DNA from: Macrostomum hystrix
Lineage: Eukaryota > Animalia > Platyhelminthes
DNA: 64,000 bases
Assembly (NCBI GenBank): GCA_950097015.1
Contig: CATNEN010000033.1
Coordinates: forward strand, 3,224,001-3,288,000
Reading direction: 5' to 3'
Shown here: one piece after another, positions 3,150 to 38,627 of the stretch
Layout: every line of letters begins with the position of its first letter
Numbering within the stretch: position 1 is the stretch's first letter
Position numbers and translations under genes: made by a program
Notes under the pieces: model-generated
Databases searched by the model: none
The model's input: the letters and a program-made list of their open reading frames with translations, nothing else
Told to the model about the DNA's origin: nothing

Positions 3150-3485
3150 TGAGAGATTATTAAAGCGATTAGCAGACAGGTGACAATGGAAGCGGAGAAG
3201 GGCTTAAAACTGTTTCTTGTTCGACTCTTTGTCGACTCTTTGTAGGGAATAGCGGCTCTTTTAAAATCAGACCACGGAATATGTAAACAATCGTATTTAA
3301 GTAAACACACTTTCACAGTTAAAAAACTTGACAAAACAAAAAAACAAAAAACGATTGCACAACTCACAAGAGTCTAAAAATGAAACAATAAGTGTTTGTA
3401 AGCATTGTAGAGTAAAATAGGAAAGCAGTGCAATATGTTTTTATTGGGAAATAGAATTGAACAGGGTCATGCGTTGGACTTTCAC

Positions 3486-11665: not shown

Positions 11666-12225
11666 CTTCCACCCTTCTGCCCTTCCTACTCATTAATCCC
11701 ACTCTCCTGTTCACCCTATCGAATTGGCACACATTTAGCAACAAAATAGAAAGCGAAATATTGTTCTCCTCAAATAATAAATCAGTGGTTCAAAACAATT
11801 TTTATTGACTAAACTTCTAAGCGAGTCGGTTAAATCTTAAGAAGCAGAAAATTCTAACCTAGTCGAGCCTACCTCTATAATTACCGCAGGATATTTTGGC
11901 GCACTACCTTACTAACACCCAGTTTAATTCCCTTGTCCCTTTCGTAAACAAGCCGGGCTTTGATCACTCAATCAGAGTGAGAACCCTGCGATAAGGGATC
12001 GGCTGTATGGGTGGGGTGCCAAGGGCGGCAATCTTCAAACCCACTATTCATTTCTGATGCCCCATGGCCAAGATTTGAGGTGGATACAGTCGATTGCTAT
12101 GAAACGACACGCTCGTATCTGAGAAATGATTTTCTCTGATTAGAAAAACACCTGCCTTCGCCTTTCGAAATCCCCCGGTAGGCCGAGAGGGAATAAGAGA
12201 AGGAGAAGGATAAGATCTGAAAGGA

Positions 12226-12462
12226 TGACCTTGGGATGGGACTGAGGATGGGACTGCGGATGGGACTGAGGCAGGGACTGGGGGAGAGGCTGAGGCAGGG
12301 ACTGAGGATGGGACTGAGGATGGGACTGAGGATGGAACTGCGGATGGGACTGAGGATGGGACTGAGGATGGGACTGAGGATGGGACTGAGGATGGGACTG
12401 AGGATGGGACTGAGGATGGGACTGAGGATGGGACTGAGGATGGGACTGAGGATGGGACTGAG
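12226..12462. repeat. 12-bp GGGACTGAGGAT array, an inverted relative of the 13368-14065 array
   Basis: Period 12; includes GGGACTGAGGCA and GAGAGGCTGAGG units. Confidence 0.93.
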
Positions 12463-13258
12463 GGAGGACTTGTGCGTCAAAAGCGCGAATTCCACACACG
12501 GGGGGGCAGCAGCCGCCCGCTGTTGCACGCACCTGGCCTTGAATCGAAAGTGAAAGCATTGAAGCAAGCAGAAATGTTTTCGCTCCGCAAAGCACATCGA
12601 GTTTGTCCTCCCAACAATAATCTTCCCGGTTATGATTCCGGTGGGATTTAGCAGATTTGTTTAGTCATCAAATAATTGTTTGTTTCGCACCCTGCTCCAA
12701 TATGCTCTTTTCTGTCCTTTTTCCCCTTGTTTACGAAAGAGATTATTTTTTTCAAAAAATATCATTCCTACTTACATTTTTCTTCAAATGGTAAATTGAA
12801 GTTTTTATCGTCAATGCTACTCTTTTTGAGTAGCCTATGTGGAATATTGAATGCTCGTTTTGATTCAAACACATGTAGGCAGTTCAACTAATAATGTAAA
12901 AATAAATATTTTTCGCCACAAAAAAATGTCAGGATTCTAAAACACTACTATAAGTAGCTTTGTTCAATTGGCAATGTAGACAAATTTAAACATTTTTTCC
13001 AGGGCGGCAGCAGCTCAACCAATCCGGAAGCGGATGGCAACAACAGGCAGGGATCAGAGGCAGCCTATAAAGATTTGGAAGGAGAGGATCAGAAAAATCC
13101 TTTCGCTTATTGCCGTCGTGAGACCGTACTCAAGCTATTTCATTCACGGCTTTCTCTTTGGCAACCTGTTGACAGGTGAGTTGACAGGTGAGTTGTGATC
13201 CGTTGATCGGTGGAGAGTCTAGTGAACTGACTCGCTTGGAAATTCTTCCCACTTCAGG

Positions 13259-15696
13259 ATGTTGAGCGTGGCCAGACCGACCGTCACAGTGGCGATTCTG
13301 GGATGCATTCTGCTTGTGCGCCTGAGTGAGCTCACGGTGGCTAGTGTTTCACTTTTGAAGCTTAATTTCTCAGTCAGTCCCTGCCTCAGTCCCTGCCTCA
13401 GTCCCTGCCTCAGTCCCTGCCTCAGTCCCTGCCTCAGTCCCTGCCTCAGTCCCTGCCTCAGTCCCTGCCTCAGTCCCTCCCTCAGTCCCTGCCTCAGCCT
13501 CTCCCTCAGTCCGTGCCTCAGTCCCTGCCTCAGCCTCTCCCTCAGCCTCTCCCTCAGTCCCTGCCTCAGTCCCTGCCTCAGCCTCTCCCTCAGCCTCTCC
13601 CTCAGTCCCTGCCTCAGCCTCTCCCTCAGCCTCTCCCTCAGTCCCTGCCTCAGTCCCTGCCTCAGCCTCTCCCTCAGCCTCTCCCTCAGTCCCTGCCTCA
13701 GTCCCTCCCTCAGTCCCTGCCTCAGCCTCTCCCTCAGTCCCTGCCTCAGTCCCTGCCTCAGCCTCTCCCTCAGCCTCTCCCTCAGTCCCTGCCTCAGTCC
13801 CTGCCTCAGCCTCTCCCTCAGTCCCTGCCTCAGTCCCTGCCTCAGCCTCTCCCTCAGCCTCTCCCTCAGTCCCTGCCTCAGTCCCTCCCTCAGTCCCTGC
13901 CTCAGCCTCTCCCTCAGTCCCTGCCTCAGTCCCTGCCTCAGCCTCTCCCTCAGCCTCTCCCTCAGTCCCTGCCTCAGTCCCTGCCTCAGCCTCTCCCTCA
14001 GTCCCTGCCTCAGTCCCTGCCTCAGCCTCTCCCTCAGTCCCTCCCTCAGTCCCTGCCTCAGTCTCTCCATCAGTCGCCGATTCGAATCAAAGTTGCACCA
14101 GAGCGAGCAACTCAAAATTAAAAAGCTGTGAGCCAAATTGAGTTTTCAGTAACTCAGGACTGACCAGAGACAGAAGCAGAGAAAGACTTTTGTGATGGGA
14201 TCAGATTTCATCATAAGCCAAATACTATTTAAAATTAAAATATTCAGTCAAACCAGACGTGCTCAATACTCAGTTGTCGAAAGAACCTGGGCAACTGTAA
14301 GAATCGAGCACCTGAACTCTCTTGCAGGCATCACTGCCGCCTCTCCAAGTCTGAGACGAAGCACCGACTCGCTTCGGGACCAAGTGGAAGGTGAGCTGGG
14401 CTGCTCAGTGGCTCCTCACTTTCATATTCCATAATCCAAGAAAACTTATTTCTCTATGGAATCTCTCTGTGAGAATCTCTGTTCATGAGAATCTCTGTTC
14501 ATGAGAATCTCTGTTCATGAGAATCTCTGTTCATGAGAATCTCCGTTCATGAGAATCTCTGTTCATGAGAATCTCCGTTCATGAGAATCTCTGTTCATGA
14601 GAATCTCCGTTCATGAGAATCTCTCTGTGAGAATCACTCTCTGTGACATTCTCTCTCCATTAGAATCTTTCTCTCCATGAGAATCTCTCTTCATGAGAAA
14701 CTCTCTCCATGAGAATCTCTCTCCATGAGAATCTCTCTCCATAAGAATCTCTCTCCATGAGAATCTCTGTCTCTGTGACAATCTCTCTCCCTGAGAAACT
14801 CTCTTACCCTGAGAATCTCACTCGCCGTGAGAAACGCTCTCCATGAAATCGCCACTCGCATTGCAAACTGTTGCAGACTTGACCAGACCTGACAGCGCTC
14901 AGAACCTGCAGCACTCGCAGCAGCAGGACAGGTAAGGCCTGAGACAATTTGGCTCTAAGTAGAATCGTCCCTAAGAGAATCCTTACTAAGAGAGTCGTCC
15001 CTAAGATATCGTCCGTGGGAAAACCATGCCTAAGATATCGTCCTAAGTACTCGTAGAATCGTCCTTAAGAGAATCCTTACTAAGAAAGTCGTCCCTAAGA
15101 TATCGTCCTAAGTAGAATCGTCCCTAAGAGAATCCTTACTAAGAGAGTCGTCCCTAAGATATCGTCCGTGGGAAAACCATGCCTAAGATATCGTCCTAAG
15201 TAGAATCGTCCTTAAGAGAATCCTTACTAAGAAAGTCGTCCCTAAGATATCGTCCTAAGTAGAATCGTCCCTAAGAGAATCCTTACTAAGAGAGTCGTCC
15301 CTAAGATATCGTCCGTGGGAAAACCATGCCTAAGATATCGTCCTAAGTAGAATCGTCCTTAAGAGAATCGAAAGAAAGTTCCCTAGAAAGTCCCTTCTTA
15401 AGTCCCTAAGTCTAAGAAGTCTAAGAAAGTCCCTAAGAAAGTCGTTACTAAGAGAATCGTCTTTAAGAAAATCGTTACTAAGAGAATCGTCCCTAAGATA
15501 TCGTCCCAAGGAGAATCGTCTCAAAGAGAATCGTCCCAAAATGCTCACCTTAACCAAGGGAATCGGCCCTAGAAACTGCCCAACCCATCTGCGCACCAAC
15601 CGCAGGTCCGAGGAGACGATGGAGGAGCTGATGCGGGAGCTGACGCAGCGAGATCAGCTCAACCGTCTCAGCAAGAGATTCGTCACCGATTGGTGA
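13259..15696 (+). CDS. Putative secreted peptide precursor (prohormone-like), 91 aa, 4 coding exons
   Basis: Exons 13259-13325, 14328-14390, 14877-14931 and 15606-15696. All introns are GT-AG and phase-compatible (1,1,2). Product: MLSVARPTVTVAILGCILLVRLSITAASPSLRRSTDSLRDQVEDLTRPDSAQNLQHSQQQDRSEETMEELMRELTQRDQLNRLSKRFVTDW. It has a hydrophobic N-terminus, RR and KR sites, and AATAAA near 15834. A probable non-coding exon lies at 13003-13175. Confidence 0.75.
13368..14065. repeat. 12-bp CCTCAGTCCCTG / CCTCAGCCTCTC array filling a precursor-gene intron
   Basis: Period 12 with mixed variants. Confidence 0.95.
14456..14845. repeat. 16-bp ATGAGAATCTCTGTTC array, degenerating towards its 3' end (intronic)
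   Basis: Period 16 at 14471, 14487 and 14503. Confidence 0.9.
14957..15540. repeat. About 15-bp CTAAGAGAATCGTCC-type array with a ~150-bp higher-order repeat (intronic)
   Basis: The marker GTGGGAAAACCATGCC recurs at about 15015, 15168 and 15315. Confidence 0.88.
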
Positions 15697-16156
15697 ACGA
15701 TAAGGAGGCCACCTGGCTGCGAAAACGGAAAGATGGACTTTGAGAAATTGACGGAAAAGACTGTTTGGGATCACAATCCCAACTCAAAGTTCCCATTTCC
15801 TTGTCATATCCTACTGGAGACGCACAGAAGCAAATAAATTAAAGTTAAACTCGAGTCGCGTCGACAAAAACTGAGCTACAAGTTTTCTTAAATTTCCCCA
15901 CTGTAGACTTAGAACCCCCAAAGAAAGCACAGGTTAAAAATGCTCAGATTTAATCGATTAGATTAGCAATCCATTCCCTTGTTTCATCTTGAGACAATAG
16001 ACTAGCAATCCATTGTGTACCAATGGAGTGCACACAATTACACAAGAGTGTAATTACGTTAGTGAAGACCAAGACGAATGTGTGATCGCCATTTCGTCAT
16101 ATTCATGAAGAAACTTTAATAAAATTTTACTAATAAAAATTCAGTACAGTCGATGA

Positions 16157-30648: not shown

Positions 30649-33600
30649 TCAAGCCTTTTCGGGCCGGATGAAACCCTTTCTGCTGCTGGATGCGTACAAC
30701 AGGTCGTCGCGCGAGATCTCGTTGAAGTCAATCACCAGGTGGCCATCGGCATTGTAGAAGCAGACTGCCGGCTTCCGCAGGTTCAGCTGCCTGGTGGCAG
30801 CCGACAGCAGCGCCTCGAGTGAGTCGCCGAAGATGCTCTTCGGTTCGCCGATCGCGCGACCATTTTCAAAGACCCGGACGCGCCGGGTGTCGAACGATGG
30901 CGGCGCCTGGACCTGCGGCTTGGAGCTGTGCAGCGGCGGCCCGAACGGGTCAACGCCGACCAGCGGGTGGCCGCGCGCCTGCACGTGGAAGTTGGTCGCG
31001 CTCGCGCCGTACTGGCGCTTGGCTCGGCCCCAGTTGGCCTTAATCTCGACGCCCTCGAACACGGAGCCGGGTGTTTGGAACGGCTCGCCGGCGGACACGC
31101 AGAGTAGCTGGTCGCGGGTCAACTTGCCGATGTCGTGAACGTCCTTGCCATCGAGGCTGAACAGGACCCTCGCCGGCTTTCGCAGGCCCAGCCGAGTAGT
31201 TGCCGTATCCAGCACCTGGTGGATGTTCTCGGCCCACACTGTCGCCGCGGTCTTTGGATCCTCACCGTTGGCAAACACACGCAGGCGCAGCATGCTGGAC
31301 TGCCGGTACAGCTGCCTGTCGAAGTCGAACGTGGCGCGGCGCGGCGGCTGCGCCTTCGCGGAGTGCTTCTCCCTAATCTTGGCCTCCTTATTTTCGAGCT
31401 CGCTGATCTCGCGTTCGATCATCACTTCCTCTCCCTTGGGCGTCTGCCAGCCCCCCTCCACGGCCACCGGGTGCTCGGGGTCGGTAGTCGGTCGAAACGT
31501 GCCCGGTTCTTGAGACTGAAGTCGGCGGCCTTGCATCATTTTTAGGATGTGCTTGTCGGCATCCTTGCTGTTTAGCACCTGGCGCAGATCGTTGCGCTGC
31601 TTGACCATCTCACGAAACTCCTTGTGCGCTGTGCGCAGTGGGACAAAGGCCTCACCAGTTGAGGCCCAGAGCTCGATGCACAAGTCGTGCAGGTCAGGTG
31701 CCGCTTCCTGCTGCGCCACTGGCGGACCTGCCGCGCCATTCTCCGTAGAGTCAGGACTGCTTTCGGCGCCTTCGTCTTTCTGCTGCTCCTGGGTGGCATC
31801 CTGCGGCTCTTGGCTGTCGTCTGCTTCCTCATCGTCGTCATTATTCACGTCGACGTCGATGGACACGGTGATGCTGATCTCCACGTGCATTGAGGCGTGG
31901 GTCCTCTCCCCTTTCGGCTTCTCAGCCGACTTCCTGTACAAAGCGTAGTCGGCCGCAATCTTGGTCGAATTGACGAATTCCTCGTGCTCCTCTCGAACAA
32001 GCGTGTCCAACGGTACGTAGCAGGTGGCCAGCACGGTCTCCTCCGGCAGCCGGACCAGGTCCAGTTTCAGCAGCGAGAACTTCTCCTTGAAGAAGCGGCG
32101 CAGGATGGGCAACTCCGATTTGAGCTGAATCTCTCGCTTCTCACCTTCGAAGGCTTCTTCATTGTTGAAAGGGTCAGTTGAGATGGGCAGGCCGAAGAGC
32201 ATGTACCTCACAACCATCTGGGTGTCTCCCGAGTTCAGGTTCGCCTGCGGCAGAATTTGGTCCAGAAAGTTGAGCGAGTACAGGCTGATGGTCAGAGTGT
32301 AGGCTGTTGGTGTTGTGAAATTTGACCCGATCACGAAGTACTGCTGTCTGAGCCGCGGCTCCAGACTGTCTCGCCTACCGGGATTTTCAGGACTGCGTGG
32401 TGAATTTCCCGGCGGCGGGTCCACCCTCGGCGTGCCCGTCTTGTCCACCTCGGCCCGGATTTCGTCCATCTCGGGCTGCAGGCGTCCCTCGTCGATCTCT
32501 TTCTGCCGCTTGCGCACTCGCTCTGCGTTTTTGGCGCACCAGTTGCGCAAGTCGGTCAAGTCGAGCACGGGGGTTCCGTCCTCCAGGTAGAGCTTCCTCA
32601 CCGCCCAGGAGATGCGCAGCTTGGCGGCGCACTGGTCCATGATGCCCTGCACGCTGGAGGCGGCAATCAGCGCGGGCTTGCACAGCCGTCCGTCGCCATT
32701 CCGATAGGCCAGAACGCGGATCGGGCGCGGAGTTTGAGCCTCGGAGAGGCGGTTCGCGATAGCTTTCACGGACAGCTTGTTGCGCTGCACCTGAATCTCT
32801 TCCTCCCATCGCTTCAGCGTGGCCTTATCCTCGCCTTCGGCCAGATCAATCCTGTCGTTGAGCACCGCGAAGGAGCCTTGCTCTTTTAGTCCAAGCTCAG
32901 CAGACTTGCCGAAAGCGCAGGCGAAGTCAGTCTTGGCGCCCGGAGTGATCTTCTGCAGCTTGAACTTTCCGCGGAGCGACTTGGCGCAGGAGACGCAAAC
33001 GGAGCAGGCTTTCACCTGCCTTTGACTCGGCGATCCTGCTTGCCTTGTCTCCAAGAAGACGGTGTAGCCCGGTTGATCGAGACGGTCGCCTTTGTCAGCG
33101 GTGACGTAATAAGTGCAGCAGCCCGACTGGTTCGCCGAGGTGATGGCGATATCCAAGGAGTTGGTGGCGAAGCAGCGAATGGTGGAGCGATCGCTTTCCA
33201 ACGCGAACAGCTGGTGAGCCCGACCAAACTGGTGCAGCTTCAGCGGCTGCGCAGTCAGCACGGATGACTCAATGTCGACAGTCTCGACTGAGAACAGTTT
33301 TACATTTGGCAGCTTTACCGTCAGCACCACGGTCGGTCTGTATTTCAGTGAAACGGAACCATTGTTATTTAGCAGCCAGCGCTGGTAAGGATTGTCTAGC
33401 GCCCGCTTCTCCAGCGTGACCTCCAGGACGCGGGCGCCCGCACTCTCAGCAGCAGTCAAAACAAGATTTGGGTTCTCCTTCGAGGCGATGAAACCGTCTT
33501 CCAGAGCGAACTGTTTCAGGCTCAGGTTTTTATTCCCTCGCCGCTTTTTGACCGGCGCTGCCGCCGGCTGCTCCGTGCTGTCCTCGGCTGATTGGTCCAA

Positions 33601-36600
33601 GTCGTTGCTCACAATCTTCTCCCATGGCCACTTCAGGCCCTGCTTTTCTATGAGCCTCTCGTCACTGCGGCGGCAGGCCCGTTCGTGGGCATTTAGTCCA
33701 AGTTCGACGTCTTCCTCATCTTCGTCGTCGGTAGAATCGAAGATAGCATCCGGCGGACTCTGCAGCTCTTTGAGCTGCTTGGAGCGTCTCTCCCGTTTGG
33801 TCAGTGCGTCCATGGACACGCCGATCTTCGAACCCGCAGACAAGCTCTCGGCTGTGATCACCAGAGCGGAGGTTCTCTTCAAGGCCACGAAGCTGCGAAT
33901 CTTGTCGACATCCTCGGCGAGCTTGACCAGCATTGAGCGCGCCTCCAGTTGCTGCTTGGAGTATTTCGGATCGGCCCAGGATTCGCCTGTGGACACATAG
34001 ATGCTCTGATCTCTCTCGAGAGTCTCCAGTGAGAAGTGCTCCATTCCCATCTCGTCGAATATTCGCCTAGCGGCAGACGACAGGCCAAGAAGGCTAGTGC
34101 AGCACTCGAGAAAGATCTTGAACTCCACTTGCCTCACAGTGATGTCGGAGCAGTGAGGCACGTGAATGAAATCGTCCGGGGCCAATGAGTCCGACTCGTC
34201 TTGGGCGCCTCTCGCTTGTCTCTTTCGCTTCTTGTTCTTCTTGGCCTGCTTGTTCTGCTTGTTCTGCTTCTTCATGTTGGTCATGTCCGGAGCCGTCACG
34301 TACACTCCGAACTTCCCGTTCCGCTCGCCGTTCTTCAGGCAGAAGAAGCGCTTGGGACTCTCCGTCTCTGGCTTGAATTCTCTGAGCGGAGGTGCGAAGG
34401 CCACCATGTGACACTCGACCGGCCATTCCATATTCTCATCCTGGATCAGCTGGCCATTCTTGTCGGTTGGCCAGAACAGGGCCAGCTTGCTCCAGTTCGG
34501 ATCCTTGTGCTTTGTGGACTTTTCGTTTTCGCTGTCTTCGCCCGCCTTTCTCCAGTTGCTGAAGTTCTCGAACTTGCTCATGCGGAAACCGAAGCGCTGG
34601 TGCTTCTCTAGCTGCTCTCTCAGCTTCGCATTCACGTCGTTGCGCGAGTCCATCTTCTCGCAGGCGGCTAGCATGTTGCGATAGCCCAGACTGGACTCGT
34701 GCAGTTCATTCTTAGGCCTGGTCTGCGGCTCATCGACCAGGCCGCCGAGGTAGGTGAGCACGAACCCAGGCTCCAGTTCAGAGTGGATGAATCCATCCTT
34801 GCTGAAGCTCCACCGCTGTGCAGCTGGCGGTCGATCTTCTTCCATGGGCGTGAACTGGACTAGTCTTCCTCTCATGTTGACACCCTGCAGATTCGTCTCA
34901 ATCTGTGCGTCCACCAAGGTGAGAGCCAGGTTGAAATTCTTCAACACTATCTGTCCGCTGTCATGAACAAGCCAAATCTGCGAAATGCCAGCTCGTGGCC
35001 ACACTGGCCACACGTGCTTGGCCTTGTCGTCTCCGTCGCCGGTGTTTGGAGCCTCCTTCGGTTGTCGCTGGGTGCCCACGACTGGCTCTACAAATAGGCA
35101 CAGGTGCTTCGTCTTGGAGTTCTGCACGAAGCAGCCGTCCTCTGGCACAGACTCCTCCGGCGGCTTTTCCTCTTCTGGCGACTGCCGTTCCTCCTCCTCG
35201 TTCCGCGGCTCGGGTTCTGGCAGAACCAGCCGCTCGATGCCGTCTGGCACACCCAGCTGAGCTCGCCACGTCGATTTCTCATCGATTTGCGGTATCTCGG
35301 AGCGAACGATTGCAAACCTGCGGTCGCCCTTCCTCCACTCGGTCACCTTGCTGATCTCCGCCTGCAGGCAGTAGGTGAACGGATCGATCCAGTCTTCGCC
35401 GTGGGAAATCCAGATGTTCTGTTCCTGCTCCAGCGTCATGACATCCGTGATCTCCGAGCCAGTCTTTTCAAACACCCGCCTCACAAGAATGCCCTTCGAC
35501 TTGCTGTTCTTGTGGGCTAGCAGAGAATTCGCAGATAGGCAGTCCAGAAAGCGCTGGAAAACGATCTGCCTGCGGTTCTTATCTTTCTTAAGGCCTCGCG
35601 AAGCCTCCTGAATGTTAAAGTAGGCCTTGACTGGGTTTGAGTCCTTGCCATTAATGAACACGATTACGCGGAGACCCGGGCTGCCCGACACCAGGGAGTG
35701 CTTCTCCGGCAGCTCGCGGATGTGCTTCATTGTGTACTTGCTTCCCTGGTCCTGCTCAGTCTGCGCATCCGGCTCGATTTGGTCTAGCAACTCTTGGTGC
35801 TTTCGAATGAAGTCATTGTACTGATGCAGCTTTTCACTTTCATTGTCCATTTCGTTACTGATTTCGTCATCCGACATTGAAAGAATTCTCTTGTCTTTCA
35901 GTTCTTTGTCCTTCGCAGCTGAGTCTCTATCAGACTGGTAGGCAAGCTTGAGCTGCTTTTTATACTCGCGGGAAATTGCTCTCTTCTGCTTCACAAAGCG
36001 AATCACGTCGCGGAGGTACTCAGCCACTCCCATCGGACTCAAATTCTCTCCCTTGCTGGCCCACACCGGGCCCAGAAGCGGAGTTCCGTGCGAGTTATTA
36101 AGCAGGGGATCAATCTCCGGAATGTCCGAGTTGGCAAGCTCTTTACAGTTTTTCTCAGCAACATCGCTTCCATCGATTCTCAGGATTCGCTTGATGTGCT
36201 GCCCGGAGTTGAACTTGAGAGTGCAGTTGTACATCAGTTCGTCGATGTTGTCGATGTTAGCGAGTATTTCGATTCCTCCGACTCCTTTCCCATTGGCAAA
36301 AATAAGAATTCTCCTGCGAACTTTCGCGTCGCTCAATCCTCGGGGTGTTGACATCGGCTTCGTGGTCTCTCTGTCCCTGTCATTTGGTAGATTAATGCCG
36401 TTTAAGGTCCAGTTCACATCAGCACCCGTGTTAAGTCTCTTTTCAAGAAGCTTAGCTGGGTCTTTGAAAGCGTCGCCCATTGACACATAGACTTCAGTTC
36501 CGCGAGAAATAGCAGCGCCTCTAAGCACTTCTTTGCCGGATCCTAAAAATAGTTTTCTGGCTGAACTTGGCAGACCGAGCTTTATTGTGCATTGCTCCAA

Positions 36601-37065
36601 CAACTTTTCAAAGTTTGGTGCTGATACTCTAGTACTGGTTGTTCTGTCACCATTCTTAAAAGCTGTGACCACATAAACTGTGGGAACTTGCAAGTATGCC
36701 GGAGTTTCTGACCTACTTCTTCCATCCCTTGATCTACGTCGTTGATTTGAGTTACGAGAACTTTTTTCATCTGTTTCACCGAAATCAGTGGTTGGGTTCT
36801 TTCTGCTTTCCTTTCCTTCGGTAAGTCCATTTCCAGACACAGAAATCTTATCTTTTTGCTGAGCGTCAGAAGACTTAGATCTTGCGCTGTTTTGAATACG
36901 ACCTGAATTACACGGCCTTAGACTTCGATGTGTCGCTAGGATGTTCGTATGCTTCAAGGGCAGTCTGTAAGGCGAAGGTTCACATTTTCGGACAATTGAT
37001 TGGCTGGTTGTCAGTTCTTTGATGTACTGCGAAAGGAGAAGATCGTCGACGGTACGGGTTCCCAT
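30649..37065 (-). CDS. DCDC1: Doublecortin domain-containing protein 1-like (multiple DCX domains, ricin B-type lectin repeats, an extra C2-like domain), 2138 aa, single ORF
   Basis: Uninterrupted ORF; first ATG at 37065 (the track starts at an upstream TTG). Repeated DCX-like motifs (FKNGD...FEKLLEQCTIKLGLPSSARKLF; AYRNGDG...QGIMDQCAAKL; FANGED...VLDTATTRLGLRKPARVLFSLDG). QxW ricin-type motifs (SQIWLVHDSGQI, AQRWSFSKDGFI, YQRWLLNNNG). Confidence 0.88.
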   Translation of the reverse strand: MGTRTVDDLLLSQYIKELTTSQSIVRKCEPSPYRLPLKHTNILATHRSLRPCNSGRIQNSARSKSSDAQQKDKISVSGNGLTEGKESRKNPTTDFGETDEKSSRNSNQRRRSRDGRSRSETPAYLQVPTVYVVTAFKNGDRTTSTRVSAPNFEKLLEQCTIKLGLPSSARKLFLGSGKEVLRGAAISRGTEVYVSMGDAFKDPAKLLEKRLNTGADVNWTLNGINLPNDRDRETTKPMSTPRGLSDAKVRRRILIFANGKGVGGIEILANIDNIDELMYNCTLKFNSGQHIKRILRIDGSDVAEKNCKELANSDIPEIDPLLNNSHGTPLLGPVWASKGENLSPMGVAEYLRDVIRFVKQKRAISREYKKQLKLAYQSDRDSAAKDKELKDKRILSMSDDEISNEMDNESEKLHQYNDFIRKHQELLDQIEPDAQTEQDQGSKYTMKHIRELPEKHSLVSGSPGLRVIVFINGKDSNPVKAYFNIQEASRGLKKDKNRRQIVFQRFLDCLSANSLLAHKNSKSKGILVRRVFEKTGSEITDVMTLEQEQNIWISHGEDWIDPFTYCLQAEISKVTEWRKGDRRFAIVRSEIPQIDEKSTWRAQLGVPDGIERLVLPEPEPRNEEEERQSPEEEKPPEESVPEDGCFVQNSKTKHLCLFVEPVVGTQRQPKEAPNTGDGDDKAKHVWPVWPRAGISQIWLVHDSGQIVLKNFNLALTLVDAQIETNLQGVNMRGRLVQFTPMEEDRPPAAQRWSFSKDGFIHSELEPGFVLTYLGGLVDEPQTRPKNELHESSLGYRNMLAACEKMDSRNDVNAKLREQLEKHQRFGFRMSKFENFSNWRKAGEDSENEKSTKHKDPNWSKLALFWPTDKNGQLIQDENMEWPVECHMVAFAPPLREFKPETESPKRFFCLKNGERNGKFGVYVTAPDMTNMKKQNKQNKQAKKNKKRKRQARGAQDESDSLAPDDFIHVPHCSDITVRQVEFKIFLECCTSLLGLSSAARRIFDEMGMEHFSLETLERDQSIYVSTGESWADPKYSKQQLEARSMLVKLAEDVDKIRSFVALKRTSALVITAESLSAGSKIGVSMDALTKRERRSKQLKELQSPPDAIFDSTDDEDEEDVELGLNAHERACRRSDERLIEKQGLKWPWEKIVSNDLDQSAEDSTEQPAAAPVKKRRGNKNLSLKQFALEDGFIASKENPNLVLTAAESAGARVLEVTLEKRALDNPYQRWLLNNNGSVSLKYRPTVVLTVKLPNVKLFSVETVDIESSVLTAQPLKLHQFGRAHQLFALESDRSTIRCFATNSLDIAITSANQSGCCTYYVTADKGDRLDQPGYTVFLETRQAGSPSQRQVKACSVCVSCAKSLRGKFKLQKITPGAKTDFACAFGKSAELGLKEQGSFAVLNDRIDLAEGEDKATLKRWEEEIQVQRNKLSVKAIANRLSEAQTPRPIRVLAYRNGDGRLCKPALIAASSVQGIMDQCAAKLRISWAVRKLYLEDGTPVLDLTDLRNWCAKNAERVRKRQKEIDEGRLQPEMDEIRAEVDKTGTPRVDPPPGNSPRSPENPGRRDSLEPRLRQQYFVIGSNFTTPTAYTLTISLYSLNFLDQILPQANLNSGDTQMVVRYMLFGLPISTDPFNNEEAFEGEKREIQLKSELPILRRFFKEKFSLLKLDLVRLPEETVLATCYVPLDTLVREEHEEFVNSTKIAADYALYRKSAEKPKGERTHASMHVEISITVSIDVDVNNDDDEEADDSQEPQDATQEQQKDEGAESSPDSTENGAAGPPVAQQEAAPDLHDLCIELWASTGEAFVPLRTAHKEFREMVKQRNDLRQVLNSKDADKHILKMMQGRRLQSQEPGTFRPTTDPEHPVAVEGGWQTPKGEEVMIEREISELENKEAKIREKHSAKAQPPRRATFDFDRQLYRQSSMLRLRVFANGEDPKTAATVWAENIHQVLDTATTRLGLRKPARVLFSLDGKDVHDIGKLTRDQLLCVSAGEPFQTPGSVFEGVEIKANWGRAKRQYGASATNFHVQARGHPLVGVDPFGPPLHSSKPQVQAPPSFDTRRVRVFENGRAIGEPKSIFGDSLEALLSAATRQLNLRKPAVCFYNADGHLVIDFNEISRDDLLYASSSRKGFIRPEKA

Positions 37066-38627
37066 TTGATTACATGTTCTTTTACAGCAAGTAACATAAG
37101 ATAGCAAGCAAGTAAGTTTGAAGAAAAAATATTCTATGTGACTTTTTCAAACTGTTTGAAGCTTCGAAACCTCATAGTTACGCAATTGAGAAGGGTTTTG
37201 GAGTATTTTTCATCATATATGTGTTTTTTTAATAGCCTTATTTAATTTTTATCAATCGAACGATATAAGATTAAGAAATGGTATCTTTCTTTGATATAAT
37301 AGGTCATCGCGGTAATTAATCAAACCGCTTTTCGCGTTACTTTATTGTCATAAACTTGTTGGCAATGTTGCAGTTTGCTTCGCGAAATTATTTTAAAGTT
37401 TGAATCCGTTTGTGTTAACGTGCATAATACGGATACAGTTCTTCTTTACAAGTAGCATAAGAAAGTTTTGTCCATTTAAAATATTTTTAACATCGTAAAA
37501 TGTATTGGCACAGTCTAAAAATTGATGTTTTTCTTTAAAGTAAAAAGTCATGATATGTCTCAAAAGCAAGTCCTCATATAAATAGAAATAGCTAGCTAAA
37601 ATTATGTGCATATGGCTTAACATGGCTCAACATACTAGGTCTATGTTAATGTTTGGTCTATTTTAAGATTAAAATTTGTCCCTCTACAGAAAAGGGACAA
37701 GCTAAGAAATGTTTAGGGAATATAATTATGAATGACTTAGCCATCTGCTTACATGGCTTTACTAGGCCATCCCTATTCTAGGAAACCACATATAGGCCTA
37801 TATTTCCCTAAACTGGCTATTAAAGACAAAGGGAAAATCAATAATCATACTAAATTATACAATAGCTATGCTATACCTAGCTAGGGTAGTATTGAGTATG
37901 TGACAATCTTGGACTCTTTGTCCTGTAGGAGTGTAGCTATTTTTAAAGCACACTTTGAAGATTTTTGAGCCCATGTAAGATAAAAAAAATCATAGGTACA
38001 AATTTGACTTTCAAAAAATTGTGATAAAAGCATCCCTACTACGTTTATAAATCTAAAAATAGTTTTTACCTATGATTGTACAAATAATTCAAATCTCTAT
38101 TTTCAGTATAAATATGTATGTTGTGCATATTGAGTCTGTTTGAGTTAATAGGAAAACATATTAAAATATTATTCCAGCTATGAAATGGGAGTCAGAATCC
38201 AATGCAATAGAAATTTTGGTTGGTCAGACCGCCTTTTTAGTCTGTGGACTGAAGAACTGTGCAACATGCACATACTTTAGATGTTCTATGCAATAGCTCT
38301 GCTACTAGCTGTAAATCTGACCCAACTGTGTGAGGTGTTTTTATACTTTTTTTTCTATTCATAAGGTTTGAAGAGTACATATCTTTATATACAGAACTTC
38401 TCATTATACTCGTATATTTAAAGCAAGAATGAAGACATTTTAAGGCAGTATCATAATTATTTATTACATATCAAGGCAGTGTTTGTTCAAAAAAATAAAG
38501 TGGAGTCACCACCTCATAATTTTCTATCCTAACTGTAATAATTATTAATTACTAATAATTGACCTGCCACAATTGGGTCAAAGTCAACAGCACAGCTGCA
38601 GCTATTGTGTGGCATGTCTGAAGGCTG

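Follow-up and report, generated by a model that had tools for sequence, protein, structure and literature searches.

A small gene between minisatellites

Within a 64,000-nucleotide stretch of the genome of the flatworm Macrostomum hystrix (the window; C33:3224001-3288000, with window coordinates used throughout for features of this contig) lies a small gene whose four coding exons, all on the forward strand, join in frame to give 91 codons and a TGA stop codon, and whose predicted product is laid out like a prohormone ending in the pentapeptide FVTDW. The assembly of which the window is part comprises 220,453,370 bases in 42 contigs (PMC10468722, Table 1). Coding exon 1 (13259-13325, 67 nt) carries the start codon and the amino-terminal and hydrophobic (n- and h-) regions of a signal peptide, and the intron after it is in phase 1; coding exon 2 (14328-14390, 63 nt) holds the end of the signal peptide, with likely cleavage at about ITAA/S, and an Arg-Arg (RR) site; coding exon 3 (14877-14931, 55 nt) encodes an acidic, polar spacer and is open only in the frame set by the splice phases. 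The coding part of the last exon (15606-15696, 91 nt) encodes a helical segment, a Lys-Arg (KR) site at 15673-15678, FVTDW at 15679-15693 and the TGA at 15694-15696. The intron phases are 1, 1 and 2, the donors (CTGA/GTGAGC, GAAG/GTGAGC and ACAG/GTAAGG, a slash marking the junction) are all of the form GT[AG]AG, and the acceptors (...TCTCTTGCAG/G, ...CTGTTGCAG/A and ...CCAACCGCAG/G) all end in CAG. A first-pass annotation had proposed four exons of 55-91 nt, buried between three different arrays and joined via canonical sites into a protein of 91 residues, and our analysis reproduces these positions exactly.

Each of the three introns contains one minisatellite, different in each, and about 40 such arrays occur across the window. 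The array in intron 1 (13326-14327) extends from 13374 to 14075 with a 12-nt sub-period, that in intron 2 (14391-14876) is a 16-nt minisatellite at 14459-14819, and intron 3 (14932-15605) holds a 15/147-nt minisatellite at 14955-15537. The 12-nt period of the first array leaves at least three frames open across both strands and thereby creates spurious open reading frames (ORFs) of 202-305 residues between 13219 and 14136, which a prokaryote-style gene caller would report.

The flanks of the coding region contain plausible signals for expression. A CCAAT box (13019-13023) and a TATAAAG word (13066-13072), both read from the sequence, define a putative core promoter at 13019-13072; a putative untranslated 5′ exon (13091-13175, start approximate) would end at the donor ACAG/GTGAGT at 13176, and a putative 82-nt intron in the 5′ untranslated region (UTR; intron at 13176-13257) would close with the acceptor CCCACTTCAG/G one base ahead of the ATG. 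This acceptor could alternatively be a spliced-leader trans-splice site; about 20% of M. hystrix genes are reported to be trans-spliced (PMC10468722). Downstream, a 3′ UTR at 15697-15860 (end approximate) includes an AATAAA at 15833-15838, 137 nt past the stop codon. Searches of the genome with the 29-residue exon-4 peptide and with three DNA islands matched the window locus alone, which indicates that the gene is single-copy.

An exon chain of this kind is rarely found by chance. The four non-repeat islands were shuffled with dinucleotide composition preserved and searched under laxer rules, any ATG-donor, CAG-exon-donor, CAG-exon-donor and CAG-stop chain of at least 60 codons being accepted; an ATG-to-stop chain appeared in 5 of 3000 shuffles (0.17%), and the same search of the reverse strand of the real sequence yielded none. 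Codon usage also distinguishes the model frame, with log-odds (trained on a DCDC1-like ORF and a neighboring receptor gene, both described below) of +31 bits, while the two alternative frames score -43 and -23; the score in the coding sequence is +0.36 per codon, and each exon reaches its highest value in the phase required by its splice sites. The GC content of third codon positions is 0.75, compared with 0.71 in the training genes. We are highly confident that the four-exon gene is real.

In the predicted product the most hydrophobic 12-residue window spans residues 9-20 (Kyte-Doolittle mean 3.0), the early RR site is at residues 32-33, and the KR site at residues 85-86 is directly followed by FVTDW and the stop codon with no glycine for amidation, and the prohormone-like layout given in the first-pass annotation is upheld. 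There is no cysteine past the signal peptide, and a Cys-free mature part would be typical of processed peptide precursors. The fragment between the RR and KR sites comprises 51 residues and is acidic (isoelectric point 4.4). One claim needs to be divided: a segment near the carboxy terminus had been described as amphipathic and helical-looking, and while AlphaFold2 predicts the last 30 residues as a single helix (predicted local distance difference test score, pLDDT, 92) that continues through KR into FVTD, the hydrophobic moment of the segment (0.21) is no higher than in shuffled versions (0.22 +/- 0.11).

Paralogues with the same C-terminal peptide

A genome-wide search for the pattern K-R-F-x-x-D-W-stop returned four matches, compared with one for the reversed control. 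Three of the four are exact occurrences of KRFVTDW-stop, located in the window gene, at C37:1339796 (+) and at C39:4818477 (-), and a profile built from these three last exons led to a fourth gene, at C2:1559222 (-), which ends in KKFVTDW-stop. It had been suggested that a conserved KR-FxxDW be sought in flatworm and lophotrochozoan transcriptomes, and within this genome the outcome is positive, with three paralogues that end in KR or KK followed by FVTDW and a stop codon. The paralogues, each of which is single-copy, surfaced only through the degenerate pattern and the profile. Candidates ending in KRFKADW and KKFTIDW (both on C38) were rejected for a stop codon just upstream, and RRFSSDW (C25) for lack of any family feature. 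A dispersed repeat with about 14 identical copies (pieces L012-L029) encodes SFVTDW in 24-codon frames within the 18-mer AGTTTCGTCACCGACTGG; we regard it as a chance look-alike, and such repeat-borne copies would contaminate naive motif searches.

The four genes share an architecture, with the number of coding exons ranging from four in the window gene (91 residues) to three in the C37 and C39 genes (78 and 72 residues) and two in the C2 gene (66 residues). Exon 1 ends in phase 1 in every case and is 67 nt long in the window and C37 genes, 52 nt in C39 and 49 nt in C2; the RR site lies in exon 2 of both the window and C37 genes, and the C2 product has a GKR site upstream. All four models join in frame through canonical splice sites, and in each the codon log-odds are positive in the model frame alone. 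An N-terminal hydrophobic core of 11-14 residues is encoded on exon 1 of all four genes, a length suited to a signal peptide but insufficient to cross a membrane. Plausible signal cleavage sites with small residues at -1 and -3 are present in all four. Both a CCAAT box and a TATA-like word precede each of the four genes, lying no more than 280 nt upstream of the ATG in the paralogues, and in three of the four an AATAAA follows the stop codon by 130-165 nt (+137 in the window gene, +130 in C37 and +165 in C39).

What the four proteins have in common at the sequence level is concentrated at their ends. Outside the last seven residues they are only 13-30% identical, with partial retention of a weak helix motif upstream of the dibasic site (for example W-E/D-x-I-L-E-x-L in the C37 and C39 products). 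In the seven codons before the stop, the residues K, R, F, T and D are specified by two to four different codons apiece, yet the amino acids of FVTDW are unchanged, and the sole change in the dibasic pair across the four genes is the R to K replacement in C2. The persistence of the dibasic site, FVTDW and stop codon in old paralogues whose remaining sequence has diverged nearly to randomness is the usual signature of an excised bioactive peptide.

Some features of individual paralogues are also worth recording. In the C39 gene a further ATG lies in frame 72 nt ahead of the modeled start (piece L011, about 4376-4305, minus strand), near the expected start of transcription, and if used it would produce an unusually long signal-peptide n-region. 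The last intron of the same gene contains a 35-nt minisatellite (piece L011, 3616-4102) whose unit ends in …GCTCAATGTCGCATCC, the same sequence that stands before the real acceptor GCAG, so that the array seems to have grown from the polypyrimidine and acceptor region. Stretches resembling tRNA (with a T-arm of the …GGTTCGATTCC type) occur in introns of the C37 gene (L010, 8255-8335) and the C2 gene (L037, about 2700-2770 and 3260-3300, minus strand), and are probably tRNA-derived short interspersed elements.

Receptor genes adjacent to the FVTDW genes

A two-exon gene for a peptide-type rhodopsin G-protein-coupled receptor (GPCR) lies head-to-head with the precursor gene, on the reverse strand at 7611-3486 (exon A, 7611-7211; exon B, 4302-3486). 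Its 2.9-kb intron (7210 to 4303, minus strand) splits the ERY motif (VER/YVAIVHP) between the sites G/GTGAGT and CTCAG/, and contains minisatellites of several kinds, among them about 150 units of (TAGA)n. The presence of arrays and similar splice sites in the intron of this real receptor gene indicates that exons hidden among arrays are normal in this genome. The best named relative of the receptor is 'neuropeptide receptor 15' of Lingula (33% identity), and the nearest solved relatives are the orexin, neurotensin, NPFF, QRFP, NPY2, galanin and somatostatin receptors.

Among at least 79 matches to GPCR exons in the genome, only two are close paralogues of this receptor, at 75% and 62% identity, with the next best at 36%. 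Both of these close paralogues lie head-to-head with FVTDW genes, those of C39 and C37, and in both an intron separates the same two conserved blocks. The distance between the start codons of precursor and receptor is about 5.6 kb in the window, 1.7 kb in C37 and 8 kb in C39, and the C33 and C39 spacers consist largely of minisatellite. No such receptor is found within 20 kb upstream of the C2 gene. The three linked pairs suggest that a two-gene block of precursor and receptor was duplicated at least twice. Once the two genes are adjacent, neutral retention is expected over a few kb, and the three pairs therefore count as a single ancestral coincidence; a rough estimate of its chance probability is about 1-2%, assuming some 100-250 rhodopsin-type GPCR genes (a guess from the at least 79 exon matches) among 34,543 annotated genes, the latter number being that reported for M. 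hystrix (PMC10468722).

The C39 spacer contains an array of more than 5.4 kb (piece L011, 4574-10000) with the unit GTCCTAAAGAATC, to which the unit of the window intron-3 array, GAATCGTCCCTAAGA, is clearly related, although its position differs and its orientation with respect to the gene is reversed. The two units could have a shared origin, or they could belong to a genome-wide minisatellite family. Elsewhere in the window, the DCDC1-like ORF used for training is intronless (30649-37107, minus strand) and encodes 2152 residues with DCX, ubiquitin-like and Cep120-type domains; across 501 residues it shares 76% identity with BOX15_Mlig002406g1 of M. lignano (2151 residues).

Interpretation and comparison with known systems

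Database searches returned no relative of the precursor. Pfam gave no family for any exon at E values up to 10; a word-index protein search with the open frame around exon 4, in which the last 40 residues were scored, was blank; HMMER found no match at E <= 0.001 for the last 30 residues among 1.84 billion protein representatives, in a search so weak that only near-identical relatives could pass; and sequence searches of the ESM Atlas and the PDB with the same 30 residues gave nothing usable. A metagenome scan for [SRN]KRFVTDW produced 39 pattern matches with no relative among them, and a literature search for FVTDW, its near variants and helix words found no relevant occurrence. Neither FVT nor TDW occurs in the peptides given in the main texts of the Schmidtea (PMC2953531) and schistosome (PMC9495596) studies. 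As a control, a protein collection that includes M. lignano returned no own-species copy for the DCDC1-like query, and given this miss, the shortness of the 30-residue query, and a conserved DCDC1-like protein that is itself only 76% identical between the two species, these blanks are weak evidence of novelty.

We favor, with moderate confidence, the interpretation that the window gene is one of four paralogous genes for small (66-91 residues), Cys-free secreted precursors that release FVTDW. The signal peptide of the translated transcript would direct the precursor into the secretory pathway, possibly the regulated one, and would then be removed, in the window gene probably near ITAA/S; a proprotein convertase would cut after KR (KK in one paralogue), freeing the invariant C-terminal FVTDW as a free acid of about 667 Da that would require no further trimming or amidation. 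Convertase genes are present, the P domain PF01483 having ten genome matches above the curated cut-off, some of which are neighboring exon pieces of one gene. The released peptide may serve as an extracellular signal, whether as a neuropeptide, a hormone or a pheromone-like cue, and the variable, acidic and helical pro-region may act as a spacer or yield another product under weaker constraint. A more specific proposal, that FVTDW is the ligand of the adjacent orphan GPCRs, so that there would be three linked ligand-receptor pairs and one solo ligand gene, is speculative, and we consider it rather unlikely as it stands; what has been observed is the linkage.

Several considerations weigh against the release of FVTDW from a secreted precursor. 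The gene and junction models are derived from genome sequence alone; the signal peptides were judged by plain hydrophobicity and the -3/-1 rule; no relative has been found outside this genome in the searches described above, weak as these are; each precursor has one peptide copy and no amidation signal, features that are less usual among neuropeptides; and a stop-free frame runs into the start codon from upstream. The lack of amidation and the single copy, together with the predicted continuity of the helix through KR into FVTD and the partial conservation of the helix motif in the C37 and C39 products, would also suit an intact, uncleaved, small secreted helical protein of about 50-64 residues, such as a protein of glands, seminal fluid or the adhesive system, in which KRFVTDW would act as a C-terminal binding or sorting motif. 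Nonetheless, conservation falls sharply exactly at the dibasic pair, the R to K change in C2 leaves the site dibasic, and a Cys-free product with a dibasic site right before an aromatic residue presents the classic context for convertase cleavage, known from FMRFamide-type precursors; we therefore regard an uncleaved protein as unlikely, if worth keeping in mind.

The upstream frame bears on a different alternative, already raised in the first-pass annotation, in which a longer in-frame ORF would turn the product into a type II membrane protein. Coding would then extend upstream via an acceptor-like site at 13003, and the hydrophobic segment would be an internal signal anchor. The frame 13003-13175 is indeed free of stop codons for 57 codons and runs into the ATG frame after the 13176/13257 splice, but it contains no in-frame ATG, its codon usage is non-coding-like (log-odds of -3.7 overall and -8.9 past the TATA box, at 13093-13173), and both the CCAAT box and the TATAAAG lie inside it. 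No convincing additional exon is seen in 11686-13002, the 57-residue translation has no paralogue in the genome and no Pfam match, the hydrophobic cores of all four genes are below the length of a membrane span, and in the C37 gene a stop codon stands in frame 6 nt before the ATG. Together these observations render an upstream extension improbable. It is more improbable still that the locus has no functional protein-coding gene and reflects a chance exon chain or a spliced non-coding RNA; the lack of any database relative would fit such an explanation, but it is opposed by the rarity of comparable chains in the shuffles, by the frame-specific codon usage and, above all, by three independent paralogues in which the same architecture and an identical C-terminal peptide persist through synonymous changes. 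Finally, an ORF at 13259-14131 runs from the same ATG through the first array and could in principle encode a secreted S/P/C/L-repeat protein of 290 residues in a single exon, but its openness is an artefact of the array's periodicity, and the strong GTGAGC donor ahead of the array and the absence of such a repeat after exon 1 of the paralogues leave this as almost certainly not the true product.

What began as one speculative ORF is now a family of four genes in which only the dibasic site and the pentapeptide are strictly conserved, and bioactive peptides are normally nominated on evidence of this kind. We propose FVTDW as a candidate for a new peptide family, so far restricted to the genus, whose genes show an unusual linkage with one receptor subfamily. 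Peptide signaling in flatworms has been cataloged only in part and most flatworm GPCRs are orphans; genomic linkage supplies three specific receptor candidates, and if the pairing is true, a flatworm GPCR clade would have been deorphanized directly from genome architecture. The hypothesis is directly testable because synthetic FVTDW is easily made and Macrostomum is amenable to RNA interference and in situ hybridization. The window gene also illustrates how, in this genome, ORF-based calling can miss small real genes when their introns are crowded with minisatellites.

The precursor could not be assigned to any known family when first annotated, and this still holds, with Pfam blank and the hallmarks of the CRF/DH44, NPY/NPF, achatin and somatostatin/allatostatin-C families lacking. 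CRF, DH44 and egg-laying hormone resemble the precursor in having, close to the C-terminus, a helical region in which E, L, M, R and Q abound, but here there is no amidation glycine before the dibasic site and the helix is the poorly conserved part among the paralogues. The C-terminal R-F/Y followed by glycine and a basic site, as in NPY and NPF, is absent from the translation. Achatin (G-F-A/G-D) represents a short, acidic and non-amidated type of lophotrochozoan peptide and resembles FVTDW in being very short, with an aromatic residue, an Asp and a free C-terminus; achatin precursors, however, contain many G-F-x-D copies between dibasic sites, whereas each gene here encodes one copy that lacks an N-terminal Gly and ends in Trp. 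The NPP and SPP prohormones of flatworms (Schmidtea catalog, PMC2953531; schistosome peptides, PMC9495596) come from the same phylum, are likewise small secreted precursors and include many that are lineage-restricted.

In layout, the nearest match is to precursors with one non-amidated peptide at the extreme C-terminus, and the nearest solved relatives of the partner GPCR are peptide receptors of the same broad group. The precursors of somatostatin/allatostatin-C, urotensin II and MCH have the same arrangement of a signal peptide, a long variable pro-region, a dibasic site and a single non-amidated C-terminal peptide. Their peptides are disulfide-cyclized and 11-19 residues long, whereas FVTDW is without Cys, the two-Cys C-terminal ring that is a feature of somatostatin/allatostatin-C is absent, and there is neither sequence similarity to these precursors nor a Pfam match. 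The only arrangement known to us that compares with the paired genes is that of the fungal pheromone/receptor (P/R) mating loci. These belong to another kingdom and involve a different GPCR class, the peptides of basidiomycete pheromone/receptor cassettes are lipid-modified, and allelic specificity is not in evidence here, the peptide being identical in all four M. hystrix genes; what the basidiomycete mating-type loci share with the pairs described here is a gene for a short-peptide precursor that adjoins a GPCR gene, the two being multiplied as a unit.

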